Below, in pieces: positions 10,986 through 54,185 of a stretch of DNA of 64,000 bases. Origin of the DNA: Macrostomum lignano (taxonomy: Eukaryota). The notes under the pieces were generated by a model. It was not told the origin of the DNA. It saw nothing but the letters and a program-made list of their open reading frames with translations, and did no database searches. Every line of letters starts with the position of its first letter. Position 1 is the stretch's first letter. The stretch lies in assembly GCA_002269645.1 (NCBI GenBank), contig NIVC01000575.1, positions 62,001 through 126,000 on the forward strand, written 5' to 3'. A program made the translations under genes and the position numbers.

Positions 10986-11280
10986 ATTTACGACCCAAAA
11001 CTCTTGGGTCTCAGCCAATTCTGCGCAGAAGGAGCGACCGCCAGATCTCGCAAAGGTCGCTGAGGTTTAAATACGATTGTAAAAATGCAAATTCGACTTA
11101 ATACAACTCAGACACTTGATTAATGCCAAACTGATTCTCTGCAAACCATTATAGTATAGCCGTGACATTTTTGAATTGCCAGACCTACTTGACGCTCCGA
11201 TGTCATTAAAGATTATTTCGGTCGCTAAAAGAATTTTTCACGTGTTCCAATAATTTTAGGGTTGATTTATATTGATTATT

Positions 11281-14397: not shown

Positions 14398-15100
<703 letters not shown>

Positions 15101-16259
15101 TCTATAAACAAATTTCCAACATAAGCACAGCACTATAAAAGTGCTATATGCTGTTAAATACCAGTGCGGATCACAGAGTGGTAAATATTGTTTTCCGCAC
15201 CAGGCCTGCCGTACAGAAGTTCTGCATTAGCCGCAGCCGCAAAGCATGCAGTGTGCGCGATTCGCCGCGCTCTCAGACCGCCGAGCTATCAATCACCGGA
15301 CTTCATCCGCGAGTTCTCCACTTCCCTCTTGCTCTCCACCACGCGGTGAGCCACTAGCAATGACAGCCGTCAAATTGTCGGCAGTTCAGCCTCCGCAGAA
15401 TGACCGCGGCCAAGTGAGGAGGCCGGCGAAGGCCTGTGAAGGGGGGGGGGGTTGGAAGGTCGTTCAGTCAAAGGAGCCGCGGCCAGGCCCCACCGGCCCA
15501 GCAAATCGGGGAGTGATTGATAGGCCAGGATAATGGGGAGACCGGCCGACTCCGAGGGACAGGGGGACTCGCAGTTCAGCCTTCTCAAATCCTCGACTCA
15601 AAAGCCGCTGGAGGCGGTGGCGGCACTGTGAAAGACACACCGCGCAACCAGAAAGAGAGAGAGAGAAAGGTTTGGCAGCTCACATGAACTACCAGCTGAT
15701 TTCTGGCAGATCGATGAATCAATGGGGCAGCGAGAGAGTGGGAGCGAGGAGGGGAGGGAGGGGAGAGCGAGAGCCCGTAAGCTTGGACAATTTCAAAACA
15801 AAATGGGGCTGCACAGCACAAAAGATTTGCATATTCACATATTTATATTTATTGCATCGCAGACTGGGGGAGGCCCGTTCAGCCCCTGCCCCAAGTGACA
15901 ATAAATTTTCCTGTCATGGCCAACTTTTTCAATGGAGCCGCCGGGTGGTCCCCGCGCTGCTGCCATCAATCACCGTGACAATCTTCTCAAAGACAGAGCG
16001 GGAGAGGAGGGGTGGAGGAAGCCGTAAAGTATGGATTATCGCCATAATTTACTGCTTACAGCAGCAGCCAAGCATAAACTAGTATGCCATTGCCATGGTC
16101 AAACTTATGGAGCTACTGATAGTAGTCTCGTTTGGAACTGCTTCAAATAGAAAGAGAGTTTCTATTTAAATCCGAATCAAAATTTTATAACCTATCAATG
16201 CTTACGCTTTTCCGGAGCCAACAAAATCCATTAATTGTATACCCAATGTAATGCAAATA

Positions 16260-16590
16260 ACCTCACTCCCGGTTCTACACCCACCTCACTCTCAGTTCTA
16301 CACCCACCTCACTCTCAGTTCTACACCCACCTCACTCCCAGTTCTACACCCACCTCACTCCCAGTTCTACACCCACCTCACTCTCAGTTCTACACTCACC
16401 TCACTCCCAGTTCTACACCCACCTCACTCTCAGTTCTGCACCCACCTCACTCCCAGTTCTACACCCACCTCACTCCCAGTTCTGCACCCACCTCACTCCC
16501 AGTTCTACACCCACCTCACTCCCAGTTTTGCACCCACCTCACTCCCAGTTCTGCACCCACCTCACTCCCAGTTCTACACCCACCTCACTC
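16260..16590. repeat. 23-bp minisatellite (CACCCACCTCACTCCCAGTTCTA)
   Basis: Visible tandem units. Confidence 0.95.
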
Positions 16591-17454
16591 ATATACTTGC
16601 ATCAATAGCATCAATAGCAGTTCACGCTGTACTGCGCTCAGACTAAAAAATGAAATGAAAAGTACAAACTTCGTGACTCGCACGACCAACAGATGGGCAA
16701 CTGACAGCAGCACCCCGACTGCCTGAGTTATTATTATTTTACGGGATGCACCTCCGATCGAGTATGCAACCAAGGGGAAAGAAGATGTTATTAACTGTGG
16801 AGGGGGATTTTCTGACCCGTTGCATGAACCCCCTACCATCTATCCAGCAGTTGCAACTACTAATCATAATAATTATCAGTGCTGGCCGCATTGACACGGA
16901 CCAGTTTTTGCCCGGGTAGAGCCTTATTACGAGCCGTATTGCCAACTGGCACGGTAATAAGAGAATAAAGGAGCAGTGTTGAGTGAGAGTGACTAGCCCA
17001 GCTGCATCACCGCCCACATGTGGCCATAATTATTGCCTAGTGGCATTATTGTCAATAGCTTGCGTGCGAACTTCTTCCCCAGCGTCCTTGGTCAATTTGC
17101 CGGACCCGCTGCTGGCAATCAGCCCGGTCCGAGTCCTGCTCCCCAACCTGCACTTGACTGCCGGAATAATCCCCATCAGAGAGCGCCGCCCACTTCTTCT
17201 GGCCATTTTTAGCACCGCCTTGTGAATGAATCAGCCACTTCTTTTGTAGAGGAAGTGCAAGTGCGGGGCACCCGTTGATTAGAGCTTCCGGTTTGAAGGA
17301 GCAGTGAAAAATGTCGTCTTGCTGCTTGTGGAGTTCGGCTTTGCTGACAGGATTCGAGACATTCAATGAGGAAGACGCTTTCTTAATATAGAAGCCGCTG
17401 CTTAAAATTTCATGCTAAGAAAGCTAAGGTTCGGGCTGGGGGAAATTAGGCATA

Positions 17455-19275
17455 GCGAAGATTCGGGTTGGGAAGATTCGGGCGGGTTGGGAAGATTATG
17501 GTTGGGAAGATTCTGGGTAGGGAAGATTCGGGTTGGAAAGATTCAGGTTGGGAAGATTCGAGTTAGGAAGATTCGGGTTGGGAAGATTCGGGTTGGGAAG
17601 ATTCAGGTTGGGAAGATTCGGGTTGGAAAGATTCGGGTTGGGAAGATTCGGTTTGGGAAGATTTAGGAAGATTCGGTTTGAGAAGATTCGGTTTGGGAGG
17701 ATTCTGGTTAGGGAAGATTCGGGTTGGAAAGATTCAGGTTGGGAAGATTCGAGTTAGGAAGATTCGGGTTAGGAAGATTCGTGTTGGGAAGATTCGGGTC
17801 GGGAAGATTCGTGTTGGGAAGATTCGGGTCGGGAAGAATTGGGTTGGGAAGAATATGATTGGGAAGATTCGGGTTGGGAAGATTCGGTTGGGAAGATTCG
17901 GTTGGGAAGATTCGGGTGGGGAAGATTCGGGTTGGGAAGAATTGGGTTGGGAAGATTATGATTGGGAAGATTCGGGTTGGGAAGATTCGGATTGGGATAT
18001 TCAGGTTGGGAAGATTCGGGTTGGGAAGATTCGGGTTGGGAAGATTCGGTTTGGGAAGATTCGGTTTGGGAAGGTTTAGGAAGATTCGGTTTGGGAGGAT
18101 TCTGGTTAGGGAAGATTCGAGTTAGGAAGATTCGGGTTGGGAAGATTCGTGTTGGGAAGATTCGGGTCGGGAAGATTCGGGTTGGGAAGATTCGGGTTGG
18201 GAAGAATTGGGTTGGGAAGAATATGATTGGGAAGATTCGGGTTGGGAAGATTCGGGTGGGGAAGATTCGGGTTGGGAAGAATTGGGTTGGGAAGATTATG
18301 ATTGGGAAGATTCGGGTTGGGAAGATTCGGGTTGGGATATTCAGGTTGGGAAGATTCGGGTTGGGAAGATTCGGGTTGGAAAGATTCGGGTTGGGAAGAT
18401 TCGGTTTGGGAAGATTCGGTTTGGGAAGGTTTAGGAAGATTCGGTTTGAGAAGATTCGGTTTGGGAGGATTCTGGTTAGGGAAGATTCGAGTTAGGAAGA
18501 TTCGGGTTGGGAAGATTCGTGTTGGGAAGATTCGGGTCGGGAAGATTCGTGTTGGGAAGATTCGGGTTGGGAAGAATTGGGTTGGGAAGAATATGATTGG
18601 GAAGATTCGGGTTGGGAAGATTCGGGTGGGGAAGATTCGGGTTGGGAAGAATTGGGTTGGGAAGATTATGATTGGGAAGATTCGGGTTGGGAAGATTCGG
18701 GTTGGGATATTCAGGTTGGGAAGATTCGGGTTGGGAAGATTCGGGTTGGAAAGATTCGGGTTGGGAAGATTCGGTTTAGGAAGATTCGGTTTGGGAAGGT
18801 TTAGGAAGATTCGGTTTGAGAAGATTCGGTTTGGGAGGATTCGGGTTGGAAAGATTCGGGTTGGGAAGATTCGGTTTGGGAAGATTCGGGTTGGGAACAT
18901 TCGAGTTAGGAAGATTCGGGTTGGGAACATTCGGGTTGAGAACATTCGGGTTGGGAACATTCGGGTTGGGAAGATTCGGGTTGGGAAGATTCGGGTTGGA
19001 AAGATTCGGGTTGGGAAGATTCGGGTTGGGAAGATTCGAGTTAGGAAGATTCGGGTTGGGAAGATTCGGGTTGGGAACATTCGGGTTGGGAACATTCGGG
19101 TTGGGAACATTCGGGTTGGGAACATTCGGGTTGGGAACATTCGGGTTGCGAACATTCGGGTTGGGAACATTCGGGTTGGGAACATTCGGGTTGGGAACAT
19201 TCGGGTTGGGAACATTCGGGTTGGGAACATTCGGGTTGGGAACATTCGGGTTGGGAACATTTGGGTTGGGAAGAT
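17455..19275 (+). repeat. 15-bp G-rich satellite (GGGTTGGGAAGATTC) with about 370-bp higher-order repeats and G-quadruplex potential
   Basis: Visible units; identical repeat ORFs are offset by 370 bp (18207 vs 18577). Confidence 0.95.
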
Positions 19276-24508: not shown

Positions 24509-25369
24509 CTGAAATTCGAAAAACCTAATGCGTTCCGTCAGATTTCTAATCTGACCCCTGACCCTTAAATTAATTCTAATTAAAAGAGCTCGATTTTGGT
24601 CTAATTTAACTAACTTGTTTCAAGCGGTTCGCTAGTTAAAAGTTTTGAAGAGAATTTGACGCACTTTTAATCGCGTTGCAGTGCAGCAGATCGCAGGAAG
24701 CAAGGAGGGATATTTTTAGCTACCGGCTAAAATGGAGAAACCCCGATTCACTCTGATTGGCTGGGACGTGCTATTTTTAAAAATACAAAAGGCAGGGAAT
24801 GCCCTGCTTTACTCTGATTGGCCAGAAGTTTTCTATTTTTAGAATAGAAAATGCGCTTGTAAGTGGGGAAATTCCTCTCATCTAACTACTGTTCCCCTCC
24901 TTGCTTCTCCGTTGCTCCTTAGTTTTTGAAACTGAACGCTTGATGAAAGCGGAACTTCCTGTCCATCTCAATGAAAATAAATCTTTCAAATTGCGTTCGG
25001 CCGCAATTCTGATCAAGTAAACTGAGCTAAATTGTCTTCTAACTGCTTGCCTTACTTGATTGTTGAATATAACTTTCAATCAAACAGTCTTTCTTCTCTG
25101 ACATCTGCAAAGTGTGCAAATTTTCTGATGAGTTAATTAGTAGGGATATTTTATGGCTAGTCAGGATTCCGGCGAGGATCTTCTCAACTCAATTGTATCT
25201 TATTTGACTAACAAGCAACTTCTGTTGCCATTGCCTGAGCTTGCACTGTCTTTGTGCGTGACTCTGCCAATCTATACAGCTCAAGTGAGCTCACAGTGAC
25301 AGACGGACAGCTCTGTCACTATTTCTCGCTGAAATAAAATTAGTGACAAGATCGACGCTGTTATAGTTG

Positions 25370-27500
25370 AGTGACACTGATTTAGGTGAGACAGACACTG
25401 ATTTAGGTGAGAGAGACACTGAGTTAGGTGATAGAGACACTGATTTAGGTGAGAGAGACATTGATTGAGGTGAGAGAGACACTGATTGAGGTGATAGAGA
25501 CACTGATTTAGGTGATAGAGGCACTGATTTAGGTGATAGAGAAACTGATTTAGGTGAGAGAGACACTGATTTAGGTGAGAGAGACACTGATTTAGGAGAG
25601 AGACACTGATTTAGGAGAGAGAAATTGATTGAGGTGAGAGAGACACTGATTTAGGTGAGAGAGAGACACTGATTTAGGTGAGAGAGACACTGATTTACGT
25701 GAGAGAGACACTGATTTAGGTGAGAGAGACACTGATTTTGGTGAGAGAGACACTGATTTAGGTAAGATAAACACTGATTTAGGAGAGAGACACTGATTTA
25801 GGTGAGAGAGACATTGATTGAGGTGACAGAGACACTGATTTAGGTGATAGAGACACTGATTTAGGTGATAGAGACACTGATTTAGGAGAGAGACACTGAT
25901 TTAGGTGAGAGAGACACGGATTTAGGTGAGAGAGACACTGATTGAGGTGATAGAGACATTGATTGAGGTGAGAAAGACACTGATTGAGGTGCGAGAGACA
26001 CTGATTTAGGTGAGAGAGACACTGATTGAGGTGATAGAGACACTGATTTAGGTGAGAGAGACACTCATTTAGGTGATAGAGACACTGATTTAGGTGATAG
26101 AGACACTGATTTAGGTGATAGAGACACTCATTGAGGTGATAGAGACACTGATTTAGGTGAAAGAGACATTGATTTAGGTGATAGAGACACTGATTTAGGT
26201 GATAGAGACACTGATTTAGGTGATAGAGACACTGATTGAGGTGATAGAGACACTGATTTAGGTGATAGAGACACTGATTTAGGTGATAGAGACACTGATT
26301 TAGGTGAGAGAGACACTGATTTAGGCGAGAGAGACACTGATTTAGGTGATAGAGACACTAATTTAGGTGAGAGAGACACTGATTTAGGTGATAGAGGCAC
26401 TGATTTAGGAGAGAGAGAGACACTGATTGAGGTGATAGAGACACTGATTTAGGTGATAGAGACATTGATTTAGGTGATAGAGACACTGATTTAGGAGAGA
26501 GAAATTGATTGAGGTGAGAGAGACACTGATTTAGATGAGAGAGAGACACTGATTTAGGTGAGAGAGACACTGATTTAGGTGATAGAGACACTGATTTAGG
26601 TGAGAGAGACACTGATTTAGGTGAGAGAGACACTGATTTAGGTGAGAGAGACACTGATTTAGGAGAGAGAGACAATGATTGAGGTGATAGAGACACTGAT
26701 TTAGGTGAGAGAGACATTGATTTAGGTGAGAGAGACACTGATTTAGGTGAGAGAGACATTGATTGAGGTGAGAGAGACACTGATTGAGGTGCGAGAGACA
26801 CTGATTTAGGTGAGAGAGACATTGATTGAGGTGATAGAGACACTGATTGAGGTGATAGATATTGATTGAGGTGGGAGAGACACTGATTTAGGTGAGAGAG
26901 ACACTGATTTAGGTGAGAGAGACACTGATTGAGGTGATAGAGACACTGATTTAGGTGAGAGAGACAGTGATTGAGGTGATAGAGACACTGATTGAGGTGA
27001 TAGATATTGATTGAGGTGGGAGAGACACTGATTTAGGTGAGAGAGACACTGATTTAGGTGAGAGAGACACTGATTTAGGTGATAGAGACACTGATTTAGG
27101 TGAGATAGACACTGATTGAGGTGAGAGAGACTGATTTAGGAGAGATAGACATTGATTGAGGTGATAGAGACACTGATTGAGGTGAGAGAGACACTGATTT
27201 AGGTGATAGAGACACTGATTTAGGTGATAGAGACACTGATTTAGGTGAGAGAGACACTGATTTAGGTGAGAGAGACACTGATTTAGGTGAGAGAGACATT
27301 GATTTAGGTGATAGAGACACTGATTTAGGTGATACAGACATTGATTTAGGTGAGAGAGACACTGATTTAGGAGAGAGAGAGACACTGATTGAGGTGAGAG
27401 AGACACTGATTTAGGAGAGAGAGAGACACTGATTGAGGTGAGAGAGACACTGATTGAGGTGAGAGAGACACTGATTTAGGAGAGAGAGAGACACTGATTC
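25370..27500. repeat. 21-bp satellite (GAGAGACACTGATTTAGGTGA), about 2.1 kb
   Basis: Visible; explains the SVSLSPK ORFs. Confidence 0.97.
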
Positions 27501-36299: not shown

Positions 36300-37073
36300 G
36301 AATGGAATGAGATAGAATGGGACATGCAATGAGATAGAATGGGACATGCAATGAGATAGAATGGGACATGGAATGAGATAGAATGGGACAAGGAATGAGA
36401 TAGAATGGGACATGGAATGAGATAGAATGGGACATGGAGTGAGATATGATGGGACATGGAATGAGATAGAATGGGACATGCAATGAGATAGAATGGGACA
36501 TGGAATGAGATAGAATGGGACATGCAATGAGATAGAATGGGACATGGAATGAGATAGAATGGGACATGGAATGAGATAGAATGGGACATGGAATGAGATA
36601 GAATGGGACATGCAATGAGATAGAATGGGACAAGGAATGAGATAGAATGGGACATGGAATGAGATAGAATGGGACATGGAATGAGATAGAATGGGACATG
36701 GAATGAGATAGAATGGGACATGGAATGAGATAGAATGGGACATGGAATGAGATAGAATGGGACATGGAATGAGATAGAATGGGACATGGAGTGAGATAGA
36801 ATGGGACATGGAATGAGATAGAATGGGACATGGAATGAGATAGAATGGGACAAGGAATGAGATAGAATGGGACATGGAGTGAGATAGAATGGGACATGGA
36901 ATGAGATAGAATGGGACAAGGAATGAGATAGAATGGGACATGGAATGAGATAGAATGGGACATGGAGTGAGATAGAATGGGACATGGAATGAGATAGAAT
37001 GGGACAAGGAATGAGATAGAATGGGACATGGAATGAGATAGAATGGGACATGGAGTGAGATAGAATGGGACAT
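36300..37073. repeat. 22-bp satellite (GAATGAGATAGAATGGGACATG)
   Basis: Visible; ends about 20 bp before the LTR element. Confidence 0.97.
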
Positions 37074-37092
37074 GCTCTAATTAAATGATAAT

Positions 37093-37793
37093 TGTTGTGT
37101 CTCGGCCTAATGGCCGCTGGACGGGTCAAGGTTCGGGCCCTCCCCGCCTGAGACACCCCTGTCCCAGCCCTCACCCCGGCTATTCCTACCCTGTCTCGCT
37201 CGGTTCGGCGAGAGTTCGCCTGACCGAACACCCTGGGATCGGCGAGAGTTCACCGTTCCCAGGTCCCTGCAGATCCCGGCCCCACGCGGCAACCCAGAAG
37301 AACGAAAGCTCGAGCTCACCTCCTCTTGATATATCGAGTTACTAACGAAGCGTTTATTGGCCCGAAGCAGTTATTGGCACGCGAAGGCAGAGGTACGCCG
37401 TTGAACGCAAAAACAGTAAGAACGAAGCGGACACCAATAGAGAGCAAACGTGGAGCGCAGCCCGCTCAGGGCTAGCATTTAAATAATACACAAAAAAGGG
37501 GAGGGGTGGGGCAGAATGGAGACGGCGAGCCAAACCCTGGGGCCCAGCCGGCTTATCAGCCAGCCAGCCAATACGAGCAGCCCCAGGGTGAGGCGGGCAA
37601 CGAGGGAGGGGGGGGGGCACCCAGATTGGACAGAGATTGGGCCGGGGGCTGGGTGCAAAGGGCTAGGCCAGGGTTGAGACTTACGCCTCTCACAAACCCT
37701 GGCCCGGGCGCGAGACGGGGGACGGGGCGGGGTGGCACGAAAACTGAAAACAAAAGTACGAGTACATACACACTGGAAGGGCGCAGCCCAACA
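37093..37793 (-). repeat. 3' LTR (701 bp)
   Basis: Differs from 45032-45731 by about 2 substitutions and 3 single-base indels in by-eye alignment; AATAAA (minus) at 37353-37358. Confidence 0.97.
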
Positions 37794-37805
37794 TCCTCCC
37801 CCTCC
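37794..37805 (-). other. Polypurine tract (GGAGGGGGAGGA) abutting the 3' LTR
   Basis: Immediately precedes TGTTGGG of the 3' LTR on the minus strand. Confidence 0.9.
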
Positions 37806-38033
37806 AAGAAAAAGAAGAGGAGAAAGGGGATGTCAAGCAAAAAGCAACGCATGAACAAGAAAGTCTGAAAAAAAGTTAATTCAAAAAACGACGGCCGAAA
37901 AATAACAGAAAAACTTTGACGCGACGCGTGGATATCGCCGGCATTACAAAAAACAAAAACGAAAAAATGAAAACGGGACACAAACTATTGCGTACGCAAA
38001 AATTGAAAACGGGCTCAAGAACGCAATTCTACT

Positions 38034-38708
38034 CTACAATCGGCCAAAAAATCTACTACAGTTGGTCGCAAACAGTCGAGTCCAATACCTGCGATCACAT
38101 TCACTGTCCGCTAGGGCTTCCGGCACGAACTTGATGGCTGTCGGGTCCTTGGGGTCTCCACCAAACGGTGCGGCCGATGTCACTAGCAGGCGCTGCCGCG
38201 GGAGACGCTTAGCCCGTTGGACCGCTCGCGGGGATCCTCGGCACCGAGCGGACACCTCGAAGAAGACCCCGTGGCACTTGCTCACCAGCGCGGCCTCGAC
38301 GGCCTCCGGCAAGTCCAGGTCCTCGGCCAGCATGACGCTCATCGTTTGAAACTCCGGCTGCCGGAGGAATCCTAGGGCGACCGCCCAGGCAGGTTCGCCG
38401 CCTTCAACTCGGAACAAAACCGGCAGGCCGAACTCCTTGGCAAGCAAGAACTGCTCCATCGCCGCCGTTAACTGGTCCTGGCGCTGCGACCTCTCAGCGT
38501 CCCAATTGAGCTCGACTTCGCCGACCGCCACGACACGCGGCCAGCTACCCGCTAGAAATCGTCGTACATCGTCTCGCAGCGATGGCCACCACGGTGCAGC
38601 ACTGGCCTTCAGGCCCAGGGCGAACACGATCCGTCGGTCTTGCAGCAGTGGTCGGACACGGGACATTCTAGACGCAGGCAGTACGGCGAGTTTACAGCCG
38701 CTAGACAT
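38034..38708 (-). CDS. TatD-family (amidohydrolase TIM-barrel) DNase-like domain, predicted catalytically degenerate; retrotransposon cargo
   Basis: TatD motifs in order: IVFALGLKA (cf. VYAAVGLHP), VVAVGEVELNW (cf. VVAIGEIGLDY), FLLAKEFGLPVLFR (cf. LAKELNLPVIIH), LPRQRLLVTSAAPF (cf. IPLDRLLLETDAPF), NCSRFFG (cf. NARRLFG). Confidence 0.75.
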   Translation of the reverse strand: MSSGCKLAVLPASRMSRVRPLLQDRRIVFALGLKASAAPWWPSLRDDVRRFLAGSWPRVVAVGEVELNWDAERSQRQDQLTAAMEQFLLAKEFGLPVLFRVEGGEPAWAVALGFLRQPEFQTMSVMLAEDLDLPEAVEAALVSKCHGVFFEVSARCRGSPRAVQRAKRLPRQRLLVTSAAPFGGDPKDPTAIKFVPEALADSECDRRYWTRLFATNCSRFFGRL

Positions 38709-39709
38709 CGACGCACGCCACGAAGGTCCTCGGGCTGAATCGACCGGCCCAGCCTCGTTAGGTATGCCTTTGCATCGACGAGACGCTTAGCCGAGCTGAC
38801 CTTGCGCTGATTCGGGTCGTCACGGGGGGAGACCTCCTGGACCGTGTCGGCCGGTCGTACTTGCTCGGGGTCGACACCCGTTAACTCTTCGGTCGCCAAG
38901 TCGCGCTGGGCCGTCAGCGGAGTCTGCGAAAGGTGCGGCCCGTCACTCCCCTCCTCCGGGCGCCGCGCGAGGCCAGGATCCACTAAGAGAGACAGACCCC
39001 GGAGCCTCCCCAACAAGGGACCCCCCAACTCACACAGCTCAAAACCCCGCACAGCCAACAACACGCACTCAAACGCCGCCTGCAGCACCGAAGGCGGGAC
39101 CCTCCGACACCTCCCGGAGCCACCACCAGAACCTCTCTTCCGCCCATACTGATTGCACAGAAACGACACAGACACTGCTAAGAATCTAGACAACTGCTCA
39201 GGCACACTCACACCAGCCCCATCAAGAAACCTCGCCACCTCCTGAACCACCAGGCAAGCTCCTTCACTATCCCCAGCCCTCAACCGCGCCAGCAGCGCAC
39301 CCCTCAGCCGCCTACACTCAGCAAGCGCAGCCGGAGCCAATAACTCGGCTGGGATCTCCGCGTGAACTGGAGCTTCCCCTGCGGCGCTTCCCTTAAGACT
39401 AGCCAAAGCTAACCTGACCTGCTCGGGCAACTCAACGTCAGGGGGAGGATTGAAAAAGTAGGCGTACTTTAACACCCCTTGACACGCTGCCTCCCCAACC
39501 CGATCGTATACTTCCCGAAACACTGGGTCAGATAAAACGCACATCGCCATCACGTCTCGCTGAGACTCCGGAGACTCTACCTCGGCAGGACAGACGCGGG
39601 GCCGCTTTGAGTACAGACGACTACACGCTGCCTCAATCTCCGCAGAGTTAGCAGTCCGACCCACGCCTAACACGCCATACAAATCAGTCGGTGTCGTTGG
39701 CGACGACAT
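38609..39709 (-). CDS. J-domain-like (DNAJB-type, HPD absent) protein whose C-terminus holds the first TatD strand; probably continuous with 38034-38708
   Basis: TDLYGVLGVGRTANSAEIEAACSRLYSKRPR...VLSDPVFREVYDRVGEAACQG parallels DYYKILG(V)SRDAS.DEIKKAYRKLALKYHPD...VLSDPKKREIYDQYGEEGLKG. ATG at 39709 in ACCATG context. C-terminal RLVDAKAYL parallels TatD MLIDSHCHL. Confidence 0.7.
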   Translation of the reverse strand: MSSPTTPTDLYGVLGVGRTANSAEIEAACSRLYSKRPRVCPAEVESPESQRDVMAMCVLSDPVFREVYDRVGEAACQGVLKYAYFFNPPPDVELPEQVRLALASLKGSAAGEAPVHAEIPAELLAPAALAECRRLRGALLARLRAGDSEGACLVVQEVARFLDGAGVSVPEQLSRFLAVSVSFLCNQYGRKRGSGGGSGRCRRVPPSVLQAAFECVLLAVRGFELCELGGPLLGRLRGLSLLVDPGLARRPEEGSDGPHLSQTPLTAQRDLATEELTGVDPEQVRPADTVQEVSPRDDPNQRKVSSAKRLVDAKAYLTRLGRSIQPEDLRGVRRCLAAVNSPYCLRLECPVSDHCCKTDGSCSPWA

Positions 39710-40046
39710 GGTCCTCCTGCAATGATGACATTTAAACCCAATCACTACCTATGCCTTGCGGACTAGCAACTGTGACCCTGACCTGACCCATCCTATGACA
39801 TGTTTATTTTACAATACGATTGAGAACGCTTCTTGCCTAGCATACTTTGTAATTTTAATACATTTAATGTTTTTTACGTGCTTTCCATGCGTTCCATTTT
39901 ATGATTTTTTTGTGCTTTGGGGTTGTATCATTTTTTTCATTTTAGGTTATTTTAGGCTTTCTACCATAGACAACAGCGTGGAGGCATTAATACAAGTGCA
40001 TATTAAAAATCAATTTATGACGACCGCCTTGTGAGCCCACTGCGAA

Positions 40047-43000
40047 TTAACGATACAATACCGGATTCCCGTAATACGCTGGGGGCACACCCCGACGCTC
40101 GCGCAGTCTGCGCGGAGACACGGCTGGCGCCGCTGGAGCCACCGGTGCGCATGGCGCAACTGGCGTTCCCGGCCCTACTATCCCATGCCGAGGCCCAACG
40201 GCAACTGGTGGCACCACATACGAGTAAAACTCCTCCTTTTCCTCGAGTTCCGGCTCTTTAGTCGCCGGCCCCGCGGGCTCCTGTCTGCACCCTGCCGGCT
40301 CAGGCGGATGCGCCGACCGGCGCTGCACTGCCGTATGCCTATTCATCAACCTGAACTGCTCAGGCCGCTCGGGTACTTTTCGCAAATTATTATAATGCAC
40401 TATTTTGCTCTTTCCCCTATTGGCGTGCTTTACCCGGTAATTCAAATCGGATATCTTCTCTAACACCTTCGCCGGCCCCTTCCAATTGCAATGGAACTTG
40501 GCTGCCTCCCCTGCCTGCAGCGCAGGCGAGTATTCTAGGACGGCATCCCCACTTCTATGGCCGGGCCTCGCACCCTTGAGTCGTACAGCACTTTCTGTTT
40601 CCTCTGGTACTGCTGCAGGTTGGTCCGCACCTGCGAATGAGCCTCAGCCAGACTATTACCTAATGACTGAACATACGCCGGAGCACTGGCAGGAATGGAC
40701 TCAGGCAAGGTTCCGATGTCCACTGGAAGCCGCATCTCCCTGGCGTACAGCATGTAGTACGGGGTGTACCCCGTGCCTCTGTGAACGCTGCTACGGTACG
40801 CCATGAGAGACGGGTGGATCAGATCCTCCCAGTCTCCTTCGCCCACCGACTCACTCATCCTGCACTTGATCATTGACTTCAACGTCTTATTGAAACTCTC
40901 AGCCTGACCATCAGCCATCGGGTGATAGGAGGACGTTCTGCATTTCTTAACGGCAAGCAACCGACACAACTGCTTCATCAAAGCCGACTCAAAATTGGTG
41001 CCCTTATCGGTGACTAGAAATTCAGGACAACCAAAGTGCGCAATCCAGTGATCAAAAATCGCTCGCGCCACCGTCGGGCTCGCTGATTGGACAAGGGCAC
41101 CGCCACCGGCCACTTAGTAAAAGAATCCTGGATTGTCAGCACGAATCGATTGCCACCTCTGGACTTGGGCAACGGCCCGACAATGTCACTCATGATCCTC
41201 TGGAAAGCTCCTTCCGAGCAGATTGGCTGCAAAGGCGCCCGGTTGCTGCGCCCAGGCTTCGCCTTCGCACAGTGGACACAGCTCCGGCAATACTCTTCCA
41301 CGGAACGACTCAGCCCCGGCCACCAGTATCTCGCCTTCACTTTCTCTTGTGTCTTCCTAACCCCAAGGTGCCCTCCTGCAACCCCATCATGAAGCTCACT
41401 GAGCACTTTCGGCAGCAAAGCCGGCGGCAGCAAGATCTTTTTCTGGCACCCACTCCCGGGACTCTGAAAATACAACAGATCAGACTCTACTCTTATCAGC
41501 TGCCGTTGTGCCCACAGCACACGCTCCTCCCACGACATCACTCTAGGCGCACTGGGGTTCGAACCCGGGTCCAGGGCATAGGAGCGGACAGCTGCAAGCT
41601 TCTTCTCGGCCACTTGCGCCTGCTGGACTTCCTTCGAAGACAGCCCACTGCCAAACACCGCGTTCACTACTGGCACATTCTCGCTAAACTGGCAGCTAGG
41701 GCAGCTCTCATGGCCAGCGTGTTTTCGGTACTTGCGAGACAGCGAATCAGCGTTGCCGTGCTCCTTGCCTGGCCTGTGAATGATCTCAAAGTCGAAGTTC
41801 TGGAGCGACTCAAGCCACCTTGCGCACTGACCCTCTACGTCCTTCAGACTGGCTAGCCACTGCAAAGCTTTGTGGTCTGAACGAACAGTGAACTTTCTAC
41901 CTAACAAATAGTACCTATACTTTTTGACGAAGTGCACGACGGCAAGCAACTCTAACCTGGTGGTGCAATAATTTTTCTCCGCCGCATGAATCATCCTAGA
42001 CCCGTAAGCGATCACCTTCTCACGGCCATCTGCTTGACGCTGTGACAGGACGGCTCCCAGCCCGACGCGCGAACTGGCGTCCGTGTCGAGGATGAACTCC
42101 CCGGCACCAGGCGAAAAATCCGGGAATGCCATCACATTCGTGAACACAAAGCGTCTTTCAGCCTGCAAAACGAACTCTCCTCTTCACTACCCCACTCAAA
42201 CTTCACTCCGTCTGCGGTTAACCTATACAGCGGCGCTGCAATCTCCGAAAACTGCGGGATAAATGACTGATAGTAGGCGCACGTACCCAGGAATGCCTGC
42301 ACCTTCTTGGCGCTACATGGCCTCGGCCAATTCTGGATCTCCTCGCACTTGCTCGGGTCCGTTGCGATCCCCTCCTGAGAGACGATGTGGCCCAGAAACT
42401 TCACCCGCTCTGCGAGGAACACACACTTGGCGGGCTTCAGCTTGACATTGGCATCCCTCAGGCACTGGAAAACATGCTTCAATCGCTCGAGATGCTGACC
42501 CACCGACTTGGCGAACACGACTATATCGTCAAAGTACACCAGGCACTCCTTCCAGTTAACCTCAGACAGGGCCATAGACATTAGCCTGGCGAACGTAGCG
42601 GGAGCATTGCGCAAGCCAAAACTCATGCACTTCCAGGCGAACTGACCCCTGTTGGGTACCACGAACGCCGTTTTCAACTGGTCCTTCGGCTCAATCGGGC
42701 ACTGATGATAGCCGGAGGCCAGATCCATCGTCGAGAAAACACAGTTCCCTCCTAGCGCATCAAGCGTCTCGTCATCCGCGGCGGTGGGTAAGGATCTGGC
42801 ACTGTGACCTCGTTAAGGCGCCGATAGTCTAGACACAACCTCAAGCTACCGTCGGCCTTTTTAACCGGCACGATCGGGCTCGCCCACGGAGAGTAGCAGG
42901 GATAGATGCGATCCTGCTGCAACAACTCATCAACCTGCTTATCAATTTCCTCCTTCCAGCGCGGTGGAATCCTACGCGCGGGCTGACTTACTGGCTTGGC

Positions 43001-44041
43001 GTTGCCGGTGTCAATCTCATGCGCCATCAAGTGTGACTGTCCCAACTCCGAGCTATCCCTGGCAAAGACATCACGATTCCGAGCCATCAGGCGCTCAAAC
43101 TCGTGCTTCTCATCGCCCGTCAGGCCACATCCTCCCCACTCCTTGACATCGCTGAGGGGGTTCCAGTCGTCTCGGACACTCTCCACCGAGTTCACCTGCC
43201 ACCCAGCTGGCTGCTGGGCCGCCACTGGGGAGAACCAACCAATTCGGCTTCCCTTCCTTAATGACAGACTGCATCCTGACGTGTTCAACACCCTGACAGC
43301 CAAGCGACCGTCCCCGTCAGGCATCTGTACCGATCTGGCCACCATCTGCTCGTTACTCACTCTCCTCTCAGACTCCACAATGCCTAGGAACTGAACCCCA
43401 GAGGGAACCCTTCTCTGCAACCTGACGTGCACCACCTTCTCTTGACCTGCATTGAACTGCTCAGGCTGACTCAGCACCAGACGGCAAAGACGCGGCTTAT
43501 CTGCTGATAAGCGAAACGGATACACACAGGATGCAGTCTGCAAGCAATTCCTAGCAAAGTCAATCGCCATCCCGTGTCTCACGAAAAAGTCAGTGCCCAG
43601 AATACATGCCACAGCCAGTTCCTCGACCACAGCGAACTCGTGCAAAAACTCGGTGTCCCCAACAGAAAACTTCATCGTCACCATTCCATGTACAGCAATC
43701 GGTTCCCCATTGGCAGCGAAAACGGAAAAATTCGGCAAATTCGGCGATAAGTCAATGTCGGCTTTTCTAGACTTCAGGAAACGGTTGCTTAACAACGACA
43801 CGGTGGCCCCGCTGTCCAGCAGACATGCAATCGGGGGCCCAAACCTAAACTGTGCATCCACATAGCCCAGTCCCTGCCGACTCAGCACACTCTGGGACAA
43901 GGCCGCGGCCCCCGATGCACCCGGATTCACTGACGCTGGGGCCCGGACGGGTGCCCCGGCCGAGCCCCCAATCCGTTTCCCGAACCCGACTGGTCCCACC
44001 GACGATAGCAGCGGTTGCGCATGTGCCCTGACTGGCCACAC
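40047..44041 (-). CDS. pol: Gypsy pol polyprotein (protease, RT, RNase H, integrase) split by four single-base deletions
   Basis: PR LLDSGAT; RT SPWASPIVPVKKADGSLRLCLDYRRLN, MDLASGYHQ, YFDD; RH FILDTDAS...ELLAV...RSDH; IN HHCC plus SDIVGP / VTDKG / QAESFN and WKGP motif. Restoring one base near 42775, 42140, 41078 and 40547 yields a continuous frame. Confidence 0.95.
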
Positions 44042-44907
44042 TCCCGGCAGACCACTGCATTACGGCACCGAGCCGTAGTATGCCCTGTCTGCAGGCACCG
44101 ACCACACTGCCTCTGCTGCTGACTCTGCTCAGGGGCTCGATGCTGCAAGCTCACTTTTGGCTGCTCAGACCTTGCTGTCGCCATCGGCGCAGTGGGCGCT
44201 GCAGCACTTGCTTTTAGCTGAGCCACTTCCGCTTTCAGAGCTGCTATCTCGGCGGCTGCCCTGGACTCCTGGCTGTTGCCAGCCGCTGCGGCCTGACCCC
44301 CCACCATGTGCACAGCTCGCTTACCCTCGGGCTCCATCAGAGCCAACGATGCCCTCACTTGACGCACCCGCCTAATAGCGTCCTGGAGCGTCTCTGGCGC
44401 TTGCAGCAGCACGCTCTCCAGCACCCGGGCTGGCACCCGAATCCCCTTCAAAAACCTGTCTTTCACCAACTCTTCTCGCTGGGCCGCTGGCAGCATTGGG
44501 TACGATTTTCTCATAAGCTCCTTGAGCACGTCTGCATATTCTTCAATGGGCTCGCCATCTTTCTGATTCCTACTCTGGAACTCGGTCTTGTAATCTTGAG
44601 CAGTCCTATTCTCATCAAACCTAGCTTCTAGCTGCTCAACAAACTCATCATACGGCAAATCATCGGCCAACTCAAGATTCGCAACAGCCTTAAAAGCAGT
44701 ATTAAAGTCAAGCAGACTGAGCAGCGCCTGCTTGCGCTGATCCCCTAGAATATGAGCCGCCTCACAATACCCTGTGAATTGTTGCATCCAAAGGGCAAAG
44801 TCCTGTGTGGGCACGTACTTATTTGGCCTCGGCACCCGCTGTGCCACATTAAGTTCGTTTTGCAGACGCGCCGTCAGGGCGTCAATCAGATCGTCTAAAT
44901 TGGCCAT
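43927..44907 (-). CDS. gag: Gypsy gag with two CCHC zinc knuckles
   Basis: ATG at 44907 (MANLDDLIDAL...); capsid-like DFALWMQQF...QALLSLL and FQSRNQKDGEPIEEY; knuckles CGRCLQTGHTTARC and CRECGQSGHMRNRC. Confidence 0.93.
   Translation of the reverse strand: MANLDDLIDALTARLQNELNVAQRVPRPNKYVPTQDFALWMQQFTGYCEAAHILGDQRKQALLSLLDFNTAFKAVANLELADDLPYDEFVEQLEARFDENRTAQDYKTEFQSRNQKDGEPIEEYADVLKELMRKSYPMLPAAQREELVKDRFLKGIRVPARVLESVLLQAPETLQDAIRRVRQVRASLALMEPEGKRAVHMVGGQAAAAGNSQESRAAAEIAALKAEVAQLKASAAAPTAPMATARSEQPKVSLQHRAPEQSQQQRQCGRCLQTGHTTARCRNAVVCRECGQSGHMRNRCYRRWDQSGSGNGLGARPGHPSGPQRQ
43975..43981 (-). other. Candidate -1 ribosomal frameshift slippery site G GGA AAC at the gag/pol overlap
   Basis: X XXY YYZ heptamer in the gag frame; pol is in the -1 frame; GGGGC...GCCCC stem starts about 6 nt downstream. 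Confidence 0.65.
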
Positions 44908-45011
44908 GGCTACAAAAACACAGAGACAACCGAAGCAAACAACACACAAATAAACTAGGCAACACACACAACCCTAAACACACGGCAGGACAGCAGGGGA
45001 GAGGACCGCTG

Positions 45012-45029
45012 ATCCTGGTCACGGCACCA
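45012..45029 (-). other. Primer-binding site TGGTGCCGTGACCAGGAT, complementary to the tRNA-His 3' end
   Basis: 2 nt inside the 5' LTR boundary; complement ATCCTGGTCACGGCACCA matches the 3' end of metazoan tRNA-His as recalled. Confidence 0.85.
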
Positions 45030-45031
45030 CT

Positions 45032-45731
45032 TGTTGTGTCTCGGCCTAATGGCCGCTGGACGGGTCAAGGTTCGGGCCCTCCCCGCCTGAGACACCCCGG
45101 TCCCAGCCCTCACCCCGGCTATTCCTACCCTGTCTCGCTCGGTTCGGCGAGAGTTCGCCTGACCGAACACCCTGGGATCGGCGAGAGTTCACCGTTCCCA
45201 GGTCCCTGCAGATCCCGGCCCCACGCGGCAACCCAGAAGAACGAAAGCTCGAGCTCACCTCCTCTTGATATATCGAGTTACTAACGAAGCGTTTATTGGC
45301 CCGAAGCAGTATTGGCACGCGAAGGCAGAGGTACGCCGTTGAACGCAAAAACAGTAAGAACGAAGCGGACACCAATAGAGAGCAAACGTGGAGCGCAGCC
45401 CGCTCAGGGCTAGCATTTAAATAATACACAAAAAAGGGGGAGGGGTGGGGCAGAATGGAGACGGCGAGCCAAACCCTGGGGCCCAGCCGGCTTATCAGCC
45501 AGCCAGCCAATACGAGCAGCCCCAGGGTGAGGCGGGCAACGAGGGAGGGGGGGGGGCACCCAGATTGGACAGAGATTGGGCCGGGGCTGGGTGCAAAGGG
45601 CTAGGCCAGGGTTGAGACTTACGCCTCTCACAAACCCTGGCCCGGGCGCGAGACGGGGGACGGGGCGGGGTGGCATGAAAACTGAAAACAAAAGTACGAG
45701 TACATACACACTGGAAGGGCGCAGCCCAACA
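45032..45731 (-). repeat. 5' LTR (700 bp) with U3 promoter motifs
   Basis: Minus strand: GC box near 45665, two CCAAT near 45563-45580, TATTTAAA at 45416-45423, AATAAA at 45292-45297. Confidence 0.97.
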
Positions 45732-46239
45732 TAATGCACGCGGATCATTCTGGAACAAAGACTCAGAGTTATTATAGGCTTTGCAGGTCTGGTTGGTTGG
45801 TAGGCCAGGGTCACTGCAAGGTCATTGCAGAGTAGAATCGAGCTCTACTCCTTCAAGCCCGCTAGGCTGGGAACAAAGACTAATCCGCGCAGGCTAATAC
45901 GGAGGATAATGTGGAGCTCAATTTGAGTGCAATGTATGACAATTAATTCTGTAAAAAATAATTAATAAGCCAATCAGCTGTCGGCTTCTTTGACTTGAAG
46001 GCAGATCCGCCTGCTTGATGATGCACTAGCAGAGACCAGCAAACCTTGCGGCAGGTGCGTCCCGCTCAACTTTGAGATGGAGAGCTGTAAACTCTTTGTC
46101 CTGCAATTATGGATCAAATTATGCGGGAGGGGCATGCTATAGCATTTGCGTCAGCTCCTTGCCGATTGCAGAATAGTGGCTGGGATCAGGCAGCGGAGGA
46201 GAGGAGTGTGAGCAGGGGGGGAGGGTAGGAGGGAGCGGA

Positions 46240-47644: not shown

Positions 47645-49180
47645 CTCTCTCTTCGTCACTCCTCACTCCGTGTCACTCCTCTCTTCGTGTCACTCCTCTC
47701 TCTGTGTCACTCCTCACTCCGTGTCACTCCTCACTCCGTGTCACTCCTCTCTCCTTGTCACTCCTCTCTCCTTGTCACTCCTCACTCCGTGTCACTCCTC
47801 ACTCCGTGTCACTCCTCTCTTCGTGTCACTCCTCACTCCGTGTCACTCCTCTCTTCGTGTCACTCCTCTCTTCGTGTCACTCCTCACTCCGTGTCACTCC
47901 TCTCTTCGTGTCACTCCTCACTCCGTGTCACTCCTCTCCGTGTCACTCCTCTCTTCGTGTCACTCCTCTCTTCGTGTCACTCCTCTCTTCGTGTCACTCC
48001 TCTCTTCGTGTCACTCCTCTCTCCGTGTCACTCCTCTCTCCGTGTCACTCCTCTCTTCGTGTCACTCCTCTCTTCGTGTCACTCCTCTCTTCGTGTCACT
48101 CCTCTCTTCGTGTCACTCCTCTCTTCGTGTCACTCCTCTCTTCGTGTCACTCCTCTCTTCGTGTCACTCCTCTCTCCGTGTCACTCCTCTCTTCGTGTCA
48201 CTCCTCTCTTCGTGTCACTCCTCTCTTCGTGCCACTCCTCTCTTCGTGTCACTCCTCTCTTCGTGTCACTCCTCTCTTCGTGTCACTCCTCTCTTCGTGT
48301 CACTCCTCTCTTCGTGTCACTCCTCTCTCCGTGTCACTCCTCTCTTCGTGTCACTCCTCTCTTCGTGTCACTCCTCTCTTCGTGTCACTCCTCTCTTCGT
48401 GTCACTCCTCTCTTCGTGTCACTCCTCTCTTCGTGTCACTCCTCTCTTCGTGTCACTCCTCTCTTCGTGTCACTCCTCTCTTCGTGTCACTCCTCTCTTC
48501 GTGTCACTCCTCTCTTCGTGTCACTCCTCTCTTCGTGTCACTCCTCTCTTCGTGTCACTCCTCTCTTCGTGTCACTCCTCTCTTTGTGTCACTCCTCTCT
48601 CCGTGTCACTCCCCACTCCTTGTCACTCCTCTCTCCGTGTCACTCCTCTCTTCGTGTCACTCCTCTCTTCGTGTCACTCCTCTCTCCGTGTCACTCCTCT
48701 CTTCGTGTCACTCCCCACTCCGTGTCACTCCTCTCTTCGTGTCACTCCTCTCTTCGTGTCACTCCTCTCTCCATGTCACTCCTCTCTTCGTGTCACTCCT
48801 CTCTCCGTGTCACTCCCCACTCCGTGTCACTCCCCACTCCTTGTCACTCCTCTCTCCGTGTCACTCCTCTCTTCGTGTCACTCCTCTCTTCGTGTCACTC
48901 CCCACTCCTCTCCTTGTCACTCCTCTCTTCGTGTCACTCCTCTCTTCGTGTCACTCCCCACTCCGTGTCACTCCTCTCTTCGTGTCACTCCTCTCTTCGT
49001 GTCACTCCTCTCTCCATGTCACTCCTCTCTTCGTGTCACTCCTCTCTCCGTGTCACTCCCCACTCCTTGTCACTCCTCTCTTCGTGTCACTCCTCTCTTC
49101 GTGTCACTCCTCTCTTCGTGTCACTCCTCTCTCCTTGTCACTCCTCTCTTCGTGTCACTCCACTCTCCTTGTCACTCCTC
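47645..49180. repeat. 17-bp satellite (TCACTCCTCTCTTCGTG)
   Basis: Visible; explains three 520-aa repeat ORFs. Confidence 0.97.
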
Positions 49181-49544
49181 TATTCTCTTTCTTATAATCT
49201 CTCATTTAGCATTTTATCGGTATCTCAGCATTCTCCGTTAGAAAGGTACCAACGTTTCTGTAAAGAAACATTGCAGTACTCAAGATTTCTCGAGTGATCA
49301 ATTCATCCTACGCTCGTACATGTACATCGAGTTTTCTACGAAAGCAAGAACGAGCTTGAATAAATAGCTGTATCTAATCCTGACAATGCACCTGCTCCAC
49401 TTAATGAAAGAGCTTCTGCATCTGTTTTTGCATTTTGCAAGCCTTCAAATTATGACATTCCTGACTTTCGCAAAGACCTCAATCAGATCGTATGGAATCA
49501 GCAAGCTAATCACAAGCATGGGCACAAGTTCCTTGCAAGGTCTT

Positions 49545-51579: not shown

Positions 51580-54185
51580 GAGGTTCAGAGGAACAACCTG
51601 AGGAGATTCAGGGGAACAATCTGAGAAGATTCAGGGGAACAACCTGAGGAGATTCAGGGAAACAATCTGAGGAGATTCAGGGGAACAACCTGAGAAGATT
51701 CAGGGGAACAACCTGAGGAGATTCAGGGGAACAATCTGAGAAGATTCAGGGGAACAACCTGAGGAGATTCAGGGGAACAATCTGAGAAGATTCAGGGGAA
51801 CAACATGAGAAGATTCAGGGGAACAATCTGAGAAGATTCAGGGGAACAATCTGAGGAGATTCAGGGGAACAATCTGAGAAGATTCAGGGGAACAACCTGA
51901 GAAGATTCAGGGGAACAACCTGAGGAGATTTAGGGAACAACCTAAGGAGATTCAGGGGAACAATCTGAGGAGATTAAGGGGAACAACCTGAGGAGATTCA
52001 GAGGAACAACCTGAGGAGATTCAGGGAAACAATCTGAGATGAGTCAGGGGAACAACCTGAGGAGATTCAGGGAAACAATCTGAGGAGATTCAGGGGAACA
52101 ACCTGAGAAGATTCAGGGGAACAACCTGAGGAGATTCAGAGGAACAACCTGAGGAGATTCAGGGAAACAATCTGAGAAGAGTCAGGGGAACAACCTGAGA
52201 AGATTCAGGGGAACAACCTGAGGAGATTCAGGGAAACAATCTGAGAAGAGTCAGGGAAACAACCTGAGAAGATTCAGGGGAACAACCTGAGAAGATTCAG
52301 GGGAACAACCTGAGGAGATTCAGGGAAACAATCTGAGAAGAGTCAAGGGAACAACCTGAGAAGATTCAGGGGAACAACCTGAGGAGATTTAGGGAAACAA
52401 CCTGAGGAGATTCAGGGAAACAATCTGAGAAGATTCAGGGGAACAACCTGAGAAGATTCAGGGGAACAACCTGAGGAGATTCAGGGAAACAATCTGAGAA
52501 GAGTCAAGGGAACAACCTGAGAAGATTCAGGGGAACAACCTGAGGAGATTTAGGGAAACAACCTGAGGAGATTCAGGGAAACAATCTGAGAAGATTCAGG
52601 GGAACAACCTGAGAAGATTCAGGGGAACAACCTGAGGAGATTCAGGGGAACAACCTGAGGAGATTCAGGGGAACAACCTGAGAAGATTCAGGGGAACAAC
52701 CTGAGGAGATTTAGGGAAACAACCTGAGGAGATTCAGGGAAACAATCTGAGAAGATTCAGGGGAACAACCTGAGAAGATTCAGGGGAACAACCTGAGGAG
52801 ATTCAGGGAAACAATCTAAGAAGAGTCATAGGAACAACCTGAGAAGATTCAGGGGAACAACCTGAGAAGATTCAGGGGAACAACCTGAGAAGATTCAGGG
52901 GAACAACCTGAGGAGATTCAGGGAAACAATCTGAGAAGAGTCAGGGGAACAACCTGAGAAGATTCAGGGGAACAACCTGAGGAGATTTAGGGAAACAACC
53001 TGAGGAGATTCAGGGAAACAATCTTAGAAGATTCAGGGGAACAACCTGAGAAGATTCAGGGGAACAACCTGAGGAGATTCAGGGAAACAATCTGAGAAGA
53101 GTCATAGGAACAACCTGAGAAGATTCAGGGGAACAACCTGAGAAGAGTCAGGGGAACAACCTGAGAAGATTCAGGGGAACAACCTGAGGAGATTTAGGGA
53201 AACAACCTGAGGAGATTCAGGGAAACAATCTGAGAAGATTCAGGGGAACAACCTGAGAAGATTCAGGGGAACAACCTGAGGAGATTCAGGGAAACAATCT
53301 GAGAAGAGTCAGGGGAACAACCTGAGAAGATTCAGGGGAACAACCTGAGGAGATTTAGGGAAACAACCTGAGGAGATTCAGGGAAACAATCTGAGAAGAT
53401 TCAGGGGAACAACCTGAGAAGATTCAGGGGAACAACCTGAGGAGATTCAGGGGAACAACCTGAGGAGATTCAGGGGAACAACCTGAGAAGATTCAGGGGA
53501 ACAACCTGAGGAGATTTAGGGAAACAACCTGAGGAGATTCAGGGAAACAATCTGAGAAGATTCAGGGGAACAACCTGAGAAGATTCAGGGGAACAACCTG
53601 AGGAGATTCAGGGAAACAATCTGAGAAGAGTCAAGGGAACAACCTGAGAAGATTCAGGGGAACAACCTGAGAAGATTCAGGGGAACAACCTGAGAAGATT
53701 CAGGGGAACAACCTGAGGAGATTCAGGGAAACAATCTGAGAAGAGTCAGGGGAACAACCTGAGAAGATTCAGGGGAACAACCTGAGGAGATTTAGGGAAA
53801 CAACCTGAGGAGATTCAGGGAAACAATCTTAGAAGATTCAGGGGAACAACCTGAGAAGATTCAGGGGAACAACCTGAGGAGATTCAGGGAAACAATCTGA
53901 GAAGAGTCATAGGAACAACCTGAGAAGATTCAGGGGAACAACCTGAGAAGAGTCAGGGGAACAACCTGAGGAGATTCAGGGGAACAATCTGAGAAGATTC
54001 AGGGGAACAACCTGAGGAGATTCAGGGGAACAACCTGAGAAGATTCAGGGGAACAACCTGAGGAGATTCAGGGGAACAATCTGAGAAGATTCAGGGGAAC
54101 AACCTGAGGAGATTCAGGGAAACAATCTGAGAAGATTCAGGGGAACAACCTGAGAAGATTCAGGGGAACAGCCTGAGGAGACTGG
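51580..54185. repeat. 23-bp satellite (GAGGAGATTCAGGGGAACAACCT), 2.6 kb
   Basis: Visible; intronic. Confidence 0.97.

Follow-up and report, generated by a model that had tools for sequence, protein, structure and literature searches.

Retrotransposons with long terminal repeats (LTRs) are usually seen as gag-pol machines with env as the sole notable extra, and well-supported accessory genes of other kinds are few. In bdelloid rotifers, LTR elements carry a third open reading frame (ORF3) that encodes a GDSL esterase/lipase or a DEDDy exonuclease with intact catalytic residues; the paper on these elements states that spliced messages are the typical source of such ORF3 products and cautions against taking an ORF3 for env (PMC5408684). 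Plant LTR retrotransposons carry additional ORFs (aORFs; PMC7264820) and an orchid Ty3/Gypsy element carries an ALKBH m6A-demethylase domain (PMC9289625). Here, we analysed a 64,000-nucleotide stretch of the genome of the flatworm Macrostomum lignano (contig NIVC01000575.1, positions 62,001 to 126,000 of the forward strand; hereafter the window, in whose numbering all positions are given unless another locus is named). Its minus strand holds one complete Ty3/Gypsy LTR retrotransposon of 8,639 bp (37093-45731). Between pol and the polypurine tract (PPT) of this element lies a third sense-strand gene, which we also call ORF3, and its predicted product joins a J-like domain to a TatD-like region.

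The rotifer ORF3s resemble this gene in that a host-type, family-specific domain forms a third sense ORF after pol. In contrast to the gene described here, they are reported with neither J nor TatD domains (0 occurrences), they have kept the catalytic residues where the window ORF3 has lost both motifs, and they belong to another phylum (PMC5408684). The plant aORFs and the orchid ALKBH domain are likewise precedents in which LTR elements have fixed an additional module of host origin, one through which they may tune their life cycle, but they differ from ORF3 in module, in kingdom and often in position or orientation (PMC7264820, PMC9289625). What appears to be new here is the type of cargo found in an LTR-retrotransposon ORF3; non-env ORF3s as such were already known. 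The initial annotation of this DNA knew of no description of the combination, and in the full-text literature we found no published account of J or TatD cargo in LTR retrotransposons, a search that did not cover Repbase, Dfam and GyDB. To our knowledge, a fusion of J-like and TatD-like parts is not an architecture of cellular proteins. The main text of a report on 137 M. lignano LTR families contains no mention of DnaJ, TatD, J domain or ORF (PMC12801592).

The host itself is suggestive, as other LTR families of M. lignano are switched on by heat shock. According to the same report, these elements carry heat-shock elements in their LTRs and thereby exploit the heat-shock response; they are of the same host and the same superfamily as the window element, but their mechanism is a transcriptional one (PMC12801592). 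If ORF3 acts, or once acted, as we propose below, it would be the first retroelement-encoded Hsp70 co-chaperone and a protein-level counterpart to this promoter-level capture. Parallels are known among viruses. The T antigens of polyomaviruses, which are DNA-virus replication proteins, recruit Hsc70 through a J domain that keeps the HPDKGG sequence; the reverse transcriptase (RT) of hepadnaviruses requires Hsp70, Hsp40 and Hsp90 for activity; and closteroviruses encode an Hsp70 homologue of their own. Retroelements would then, like polyomaviruses and closteroviruses, bring their own link to host protein folding. The T antigens, which engage host Hsp70 with a J domain of their own, are resembled by the ORF3 of a second M. 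lignano family described below, which has an intact His-Pro-Asp (HPD) motif; unlike them, the window protein has RPR at this place, and apart from the J fold the two are unrelated in sequence.

A third gene between pol and the polypurine tract

ORF3 extends over about 560 codons from an ATG at 39709 to a stop at 38034, on the minus strand and so on the sense strand of the element. It is set off from pol, which stops at 40047, by a 337-nt spacer (39710-40046, 38% GC) ending in a putative splice acceptor, and from the PPT by 228 nt that are also 38% GC. ORF3 itself has a GC content of 61-62% and the codon-position pattern GC1>GC2<GC3 seen in gag and pol. The probability that its larger segment would stay stop-free by chance is ~8e-6, and the ORFs of the opposite strand are all short (95-117 residues). 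Positions 39709 to 38034 (~1.7 kb) are sense-strand coding sequence. As this additional gene follows pol in the sense orientation, ahead of the PPT, and is found again in other copies and in a second family, the element falls into the class of LTR retrotransposons with additional ORFs. The initial annotation had placed the pol stop (40047) and the PPT (37805) exactly where we find them and had described ~1.7 kb of open coding sequence in between; the coding character stands. In the window copy, ORF3 is not one open frame but contains one -1 frame change.

We considered whether ORF3 could be an env gene and rejected this: the maximum Kyte-Doolittle mean over 19 residues is 1.49, the N-terminus is non-hydrophobic and there are no env-like matches. 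As it has neither a signal peptide nor a membrane segment, ORF3 is not env. From its sequence, it is predicted to encode a soluble protein of ~560 residues with a J-like N-terminus, a helical middle, a linker and a TatD-like C-terminus. A 96-codon stretch within ORF3 (38925-39212) is spliced out in two gene models from other copies (P0121 and P0122, see below), its bounds being a consensus GTGAGT donor and a CAG acceptor. We nevertheless treated it as coding and not as an intron, since it is in frame, stop-free and of coding composition; alternative splicing or an artefact of gene prediction may account for its removal.

The DNAJB-like N-terminus of the initial annotation was borne out by both profile and structure databases. 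The J-like domain covers residues 8-82 (39464-39688); all 36 PDB matches of this region are J domains, the best being DNAJB13 (E 3.7e-5), and all eight NCBIfam matches are DnaJ models (best E 7e-6). Alignment to four J proteins showed that the positions that define the fold (Y11, L14-G15 and the LSDP..R..YD block) are kept, whereas HPD, the tripeptide between helices II and III that is required to stimulate the Hsp70 ATPase, is changed to RPR, with a charge reversal at the Asp; the alignment to 9dyv gives the same reading. With a match to the J-domain profile (PF00226 family) but no HPD, we class the domain as J-like and not as a canonical J protein. DNAJB13, also known as radial spoke protein 16, departs from HPD as well (HPL in the alignment) and serves as a structural component, and thus offers a precedent for J-like domains as scaffolds. 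It differs from ORF3 in being a ciliary protein of the host and in having the C-terminal domains of DNAJB proteins, and the match between the two is confined to the J domain.

The helical middle (approximately residues 96-243; 38981-39424) was delimited from the secondary structure of a low-confidence model. It has no database match, as all PDB matches of the segment that contains it, listed up to E 10, are confined to the J domain, and the linker that follows is probably disordered. Single-sequence AlphaFold2 predictions reached a predicted local distance difference test score (pLDDT) of 43.5 for the J segment and 41.6 for the TatD-like segment, values at which only secondary structure is usable; they place four helices across the J part and an alternation of beta strands and alpha helices across the TatD-like part. 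With the latter model, Foldseek returned no match at E<=0.001; in second place stood YjjV, a TatD homologue (E 7.5e-3), with other TIM barrels after it.

The TatD-like region (38049-38639) matches positions 52-250 of the 253 positions of TIGR00010 colinearly (E 3.2e-5), with 23.5 bits against a curated cut-off of 206 bits. All four NCBIfam matches are to the TatD family (TIGR00010, PRK10425, PRK11449 and QatD), and seven of eight PDB matches are TatD proteins at E 0.06-0.15 (E 0.05-0.2 over all comparisons with TatD structures); PADLOC gave only a marginal match to QatD, a TatD-family protein, and the PHROGs profiles gave no match for the ORF3 protein. ORF3 resembles TatD, YcfH and YjjV (TIGR00010, PF01026) over ~200 colinear residues that include a GE.GLD-like strand, VGEVELNW, and an ..ETDAP-like strand, VTSAAP. 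It differs from them in its score, in the first beta-alpha unit of the barrel, which profile comparison did not detect in the ORF3 C-terminus, and in its metal ligands. In E. coli TatD numbering, the equivalent of Glu91 is kept, whereas His127, His152, Glu201 and Asp203 are replaced by Arg, Leu, Thr and Ala, so that one of the five conserved metal-binding and catalytic residues is left; the same assignment comes from independent alignments with E. coli TatD and with S. aureus YcfH. The C-terminus, a TatD barrel in the initial annotation, is therefore likely homologous to TatD without being an established member of the family. The enzymatic roles that this annotation had implied fit poorly, as RPR in place of HPD and the replacement of four of five TatD ligands make a classical co-chaperone or nuclease activity of this protein unlikely.

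Further copies and a second family in M. lignano

An exhaustive HMMER search with the upstream segment of ORF3 (J-like domain, middle and linker) yielded three strong matches, all of them M. lignano UniProt entries: A0A1I8I0H8 (P0121, 3511 residues), A0A1I8I457 (P0122, 1229 residues) and A0A1I8HEH7 (P0123, 173 residues), the last two under the name 'J domain-containing protein'. Their cargo is 97-100% identical to the window ORF3. The three come from other loci, and in each of them the gene model joins the cargo to peptides encoded by the LTR of the window element. Judging from these matches, the cargo is present in at least three further LTR-linked copies. The gene models, which stem from another assembly, read ORF3 as one frame. 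The same search found no LTR-free host gene for the J-plus-middle segment; the TatD-like part alone was not searched in this way. A word-indexed protein search with both ORF3 segments gave no match, a weak negative given that the near-identical P0121 and P0122 sit in the same collection. Exact-product look-ups with the downstream ORF3 segment and with gag (two start choices) returned no contig, and scans of metagenome and viral contigs returned no relatives of the element.

In UniProt, the cargo appears as a host 'J domain-containing protein' or 'ribonuclease H' in chimeric models of 173 to 3511 residues, and such mislabelled models mislead, and would inflate, counts of DNAJ genes in M. lignano. 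The chimeras P0121-P0123 fuse the LTR and ORF3 with non-LTR RT/RNase H and with low-complexity sequence.

A search for relatives of pol led to a second family. The closest relative (67% identical) is on a short Logan contig (L001) that ends ~200 nt past pol and is uninformative on ORF3. The next is an annotated M. lignano protein (P0002, 50% identical) whose locus, L003, is in the window's own assembly, GCA_002269645.1. L003 holds a different M. lignano Gypsy family, whose identity to the window element is highest in RT (54%), followed by RNase H-integrase (IN; 50%), gag (36%) and the protease region (33%); the two have a common primer-binding site (PBS) and common LTR termini, TGTTG...ACACAACA. 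The L003 element also carries an ORF3, of 283 residues (L003 15450-16301), between pol and the PPT and 3' LTR (17016-17809). Its first 70 residues form a canonical J domain with HPD intact (E 2e-12 against human HSP40), for which 54 of 54 PDB matches are J-domain-containing proteins. It has no TatD-like part and ends in an acidic tail instead. The J domains of the two families are 28-33% identical and thus about as diverged as gag. Past the J domain, the two ORF3s align weakly and in colinear order (z = 3.9), with 1 of 300 shuffles reaching this score. Both the LTR-linked copies and the J-type ORF3 at the same place in L003 bear out the earlier proposal that the cargo is retained and not private to the window copy; more broadly, the LTRs and other structural signals together with the domain matches confirm a Gypsy element with a J-like and TatD-like gene in the env position. 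The L003 element (~5064-17809) contains a ~3.3-kb internal tandem duplication, either genuine or produced by the assembly, which repeats the start of ORF3 along with part of pol and yields a second, truncated J-domain ORF, and its 5' LTR has an unrelated Tc1-like transposase insertion.

The frame change in the window ORF3 is one of many in these elements. In the window element, a -1 frame change leads from gag into pol, a situation found in many Gypsy elements, and pol contains four further -1 frame changes and zero in-frame stops; L003 pol has three -1 frame changes. Inside pol and ORF3, this makes eight changes over the two elements, every one of the -1 type. We suspect that most of those in the window copy are assembly errors and not mutations, because they all run one way, because the LTR pair has more one-base gaps (three) than substitutions (two), because ORF3 is uninterrupted in the gene models of another assembly and because the genome assemblies of this worm were built on PacBio data and polished with short reads. 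In multi-copy repeats, polishing of this kind is unreliable, and -1-only frame changes with an excess of LTR gaps are a signature of deletion-biased long-read assembly error in repeats. The assemblies are described as repeat-rich as well (PMC5730564).

Both families have a candidate route for expressing ORF3. In the window element, a putative 5' splice donor, AAGAGGAG followed by GTGAGC, lies in U5 (45253-45266, minus strand; last exon base 45259), 39 nt past the start of the LTR AATAAA. A putative 3' splice acceptor, TCATCATTGCAG, lies 7 nt ahead of the ORF3 ATG (39717-39728, minus strand). The gene models of P0121 and P0123 both begin the ORF3 exon at this acceptor, and that of P0123 links the LTR donor to the codons just ahead of the ATG. 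In the L003 family, GTAAGT is found 68 nt past the start of AATAAA and a pyrimidine-rich ...TTTTAAG ends 1 nt ahead of the ORF3 ATG, so that the two families have in common a GTRAG donor after AATAAA and a pyrimidine-rich AG acceptor before ORF3. By analogy, this layout would be that of a retroviral env mRNA. We therefore propose that ORF3 may be translated from a subgenomic RNA, which could arise by cis-splicing that joins the U5 donor to the acceptor closely preceding the ATG, in the manner of retroviral env mRNA. In M. lignano, 39% of genes are trans-spliced, and polycistronic precursors that contain more than one trans-splicing site make up ~7% of the assembled transcripts (PMC5730564). 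Given this way of resolving polycistronic transcripts, addition of a spliced leader at the ORF3 acceptor would be an equally good route.

Proposed role of ORF3 and rival explanations

We favour, with a probability of about 0.5, a reading in which ORF3 is a lineage-inherited and maintained accessory J-protein gene that, in the window family, would act as a non-catalytic adaptor produced from a subgenomic RNA. A J-protein ORF3 would already have been present in the common ancestor of the window and L003 families and would have been kept as an accessory gene since; the common position, the common signals and the gag-like divergence of the J domains make a single ancestral acquisition the most economical account. 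Its ancestral role may have been to recruit host Hsp70 to the Gag particle or to the RT/IN complex of the element. This is suggested by the HPD of the L003 J domain, as the one known activity of an HPD-bearing J domain is to hand a client to Hsp70. In the window family, the protein would have lost the capacity for Hsp70 activation and for nucleic acid cleavage by canonical chemistry, and its J-like and TatD-like folds may serve as binding surfaces that engage nucleic acid ends or hybrids and a chaperone or other host partner. That ~560 codons are open and compositionally coding despite the lost motifs appears to fit a pseudo-enzyme binding module better than neutral decay. A fuller version of the idea is tentative, and we see it as possible rather than probable: a flatworm Ty3/Gypsy lineage would encode its own J-protein coupling particle assembly or reverse transcription to chaperones, and one of its families would have turned this protein, without HPD and with a dead TatD fold, into a pseudo-enzyme adaptor or decoy.

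The canonical J domain in a second family strengthens this finding, and several observations weigh against our preferred reading. Loss of both catalytic motifs weakens it, since loss of HPD and of the TatD ligands is also what decay would give, and the TatD homology rests on ~23 bits, with the family threshold missed. All accessible copies of ORF3 are, at 97-100% identity, too alike for an estimate of the ratio of non-synonymous to synonymous substitution rates (dN/dS). No J or TatD coding sequence follows pol in four more distant relatives, two on European Nucleotide Archive contigs (L002, L004), one from Dicrocoelium (L005) and one on a TARA scaffold (L006). The window J-like domain is nominally closer to unrelated metagenomic J proteins (37-41% identical) than to the J domain of L003 (28-33%). 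Motifs as short as these splice signals would turn up by chance about once in each LTR, and the gene models that use them are predictions. Finally, the LTRs of neither the window family nor the L003 family contain a canonical heat-shock element, so there is no direct link to the heat-induced families (PMC12801592).

Among the rival explanations, the one that draws most on these points is that ORF3 is a passenger: a fragment of host mRNA with J and TatD parts was copied in by template switching, is of no use to the element and is decaying, and its copies look intact only because they derive recently from one master. The absence of HPD and of the metal ligands and the frameshift in the window copy are in its favour, and near-identical copies offer no independent sign of constraint. 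However, drift long enough to reduce TatD similarity to ~23 bits should have put stops throughout ~560 codons, and the frame is open in other copies and keeps a coding-type codon-position composition. The frameshift is itself probably an assembly error, given that all such changes are -1 and that LTR gaps outnumber substitutions. In addition, the L003 family keeps a J-type ORF3 with intact HPD, and no separate host gene came up when the J-plus-middle segment was searched exhaustively, the three strong matches all being LTR-linked. We thus consider a useless relic unlikely. Slightly less likely again is that the two families captured a J gene independently, the interval between pol and the PPT being the only permissive insertion site, a scenario compatible with either function. 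The J domains are indeed only 28-33% identical, that of the window is nearer to unrelated J proteins, and the C-terminal parts differ (TatD-like as opposed to an acidic tail). On the other hand, this divergence equals that of gag and the protease region, the post-J regions are weakly colinear, the donor and acceptor layout is common to both families, and two separate acquisitions of one rare domain, at one position and in sister lineages, make a less parsimonious account.

An active enzyme module, in which a working Hsp70 co-chaperone is fused to a working TatD nuclease acting on cDNA or RNA:DNA hybrids, is improbable. Both folds are recognisable, and E. coli TatD itself lacks the N-terminal HxH motif, the absence of which alone is therefore not disqualifying; but the charge reversal in RPR and the four ligand replacements, on which two independent alignments agree, speak against such chemistry. 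Least probable by far is that a host gene was caught between two elements or that the locus is an assembly chimera. M. lignano assemblies are repeat-rich and PacBio-based, and the UniProt models with the cargo are obvious chimeras of several repeats. Yet a single LTR pair, 99.3% identical and flanked by a matching 4-bp duplication, encloses a correctly placed PBS and PPT, the gene models of another assembly show the linkage between LTR and cargo as well, and the L003 element has the same layout.

Anatomy of the element and its surroundings

Every feature of Ty3/Gypsy (Metaviridae) elements that we tested is present in the window element: an LTR pair, a target-site duplication (TSD), a PBS, a PPT, CCHC knuckles in gag and the order of domains in pol. 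The 5' LTR (45032-45731, 700 nt) and the 3' LTR (37093-37793, 701 nt), both on the minus strand, have TG..CA termini and differ over their full length by two substitutions and three one-base gaps; the element is very young. A 4-bp TSD, ATTA on the element strand, stands on either side (45732-45735 beside the 5' LTR, 37089-37092 beside the 3' LTR). LTR positions 309 and 435 of the 5' LTR hold a TATTTAAA box and AATAAA, respectively. Two nucleotides past this LTR lies the 18-nt PBS, TGGTGCCGTGACCAGGAT (45012-45029, minus strand), which begins with TGG; it is also found after the 5' LTR of the L003 element, and both copies translate as WCRDQD. There are no tRNA genes in the window, and so no primer candidate from there. 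The PPT, GGAGGGGGAGGA (37794-37805, minus strand), adjoins the 3' LTR.

Gag (43927-44907, minus strand) is intact, and its translation contains two CX2CX4HX4C zinc knuckles of the CCHC type. Pol (40047-44059, minus strand) encodes, in translation, a protease with DSG, RT with YFDD, RNase H and an integrase with HHCC and core, and this order is that of Gypsy elements; relatives of its RNase H-integrase part bear the Pfam domains RT_RNaseH, Integrase_H2C2 and rve. We take the CCHC knuckles to speak against placement in the CsRN1 clade and the domain order to speak against Gmr1.

No further copy of the element was found inside the window, which is filled with minisatellite arrays: 66 rows of Tandem Repeats Finder (TRF) output with periods of mostly 14-47 nt and up to 113 copies, for example at 25369-27499, 36302-37074, 47647-49185 and 51584-54181. 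This load is consistent with a tandem-repeat content of 15% in M. lignano (PMC5730564). An array with a 22-bp period directly adjoins the 3' LTR, so that the site of insertion lay within tandem-repeat DNA or next to it. In a block of 65% GC some 31 kb away, an ORF of 701 residues (3679-5784, minus strand) matches a teashirt-type zinc finger (PDB 2dmi, E 1e-11) and is probably a host transcription-factor gene.

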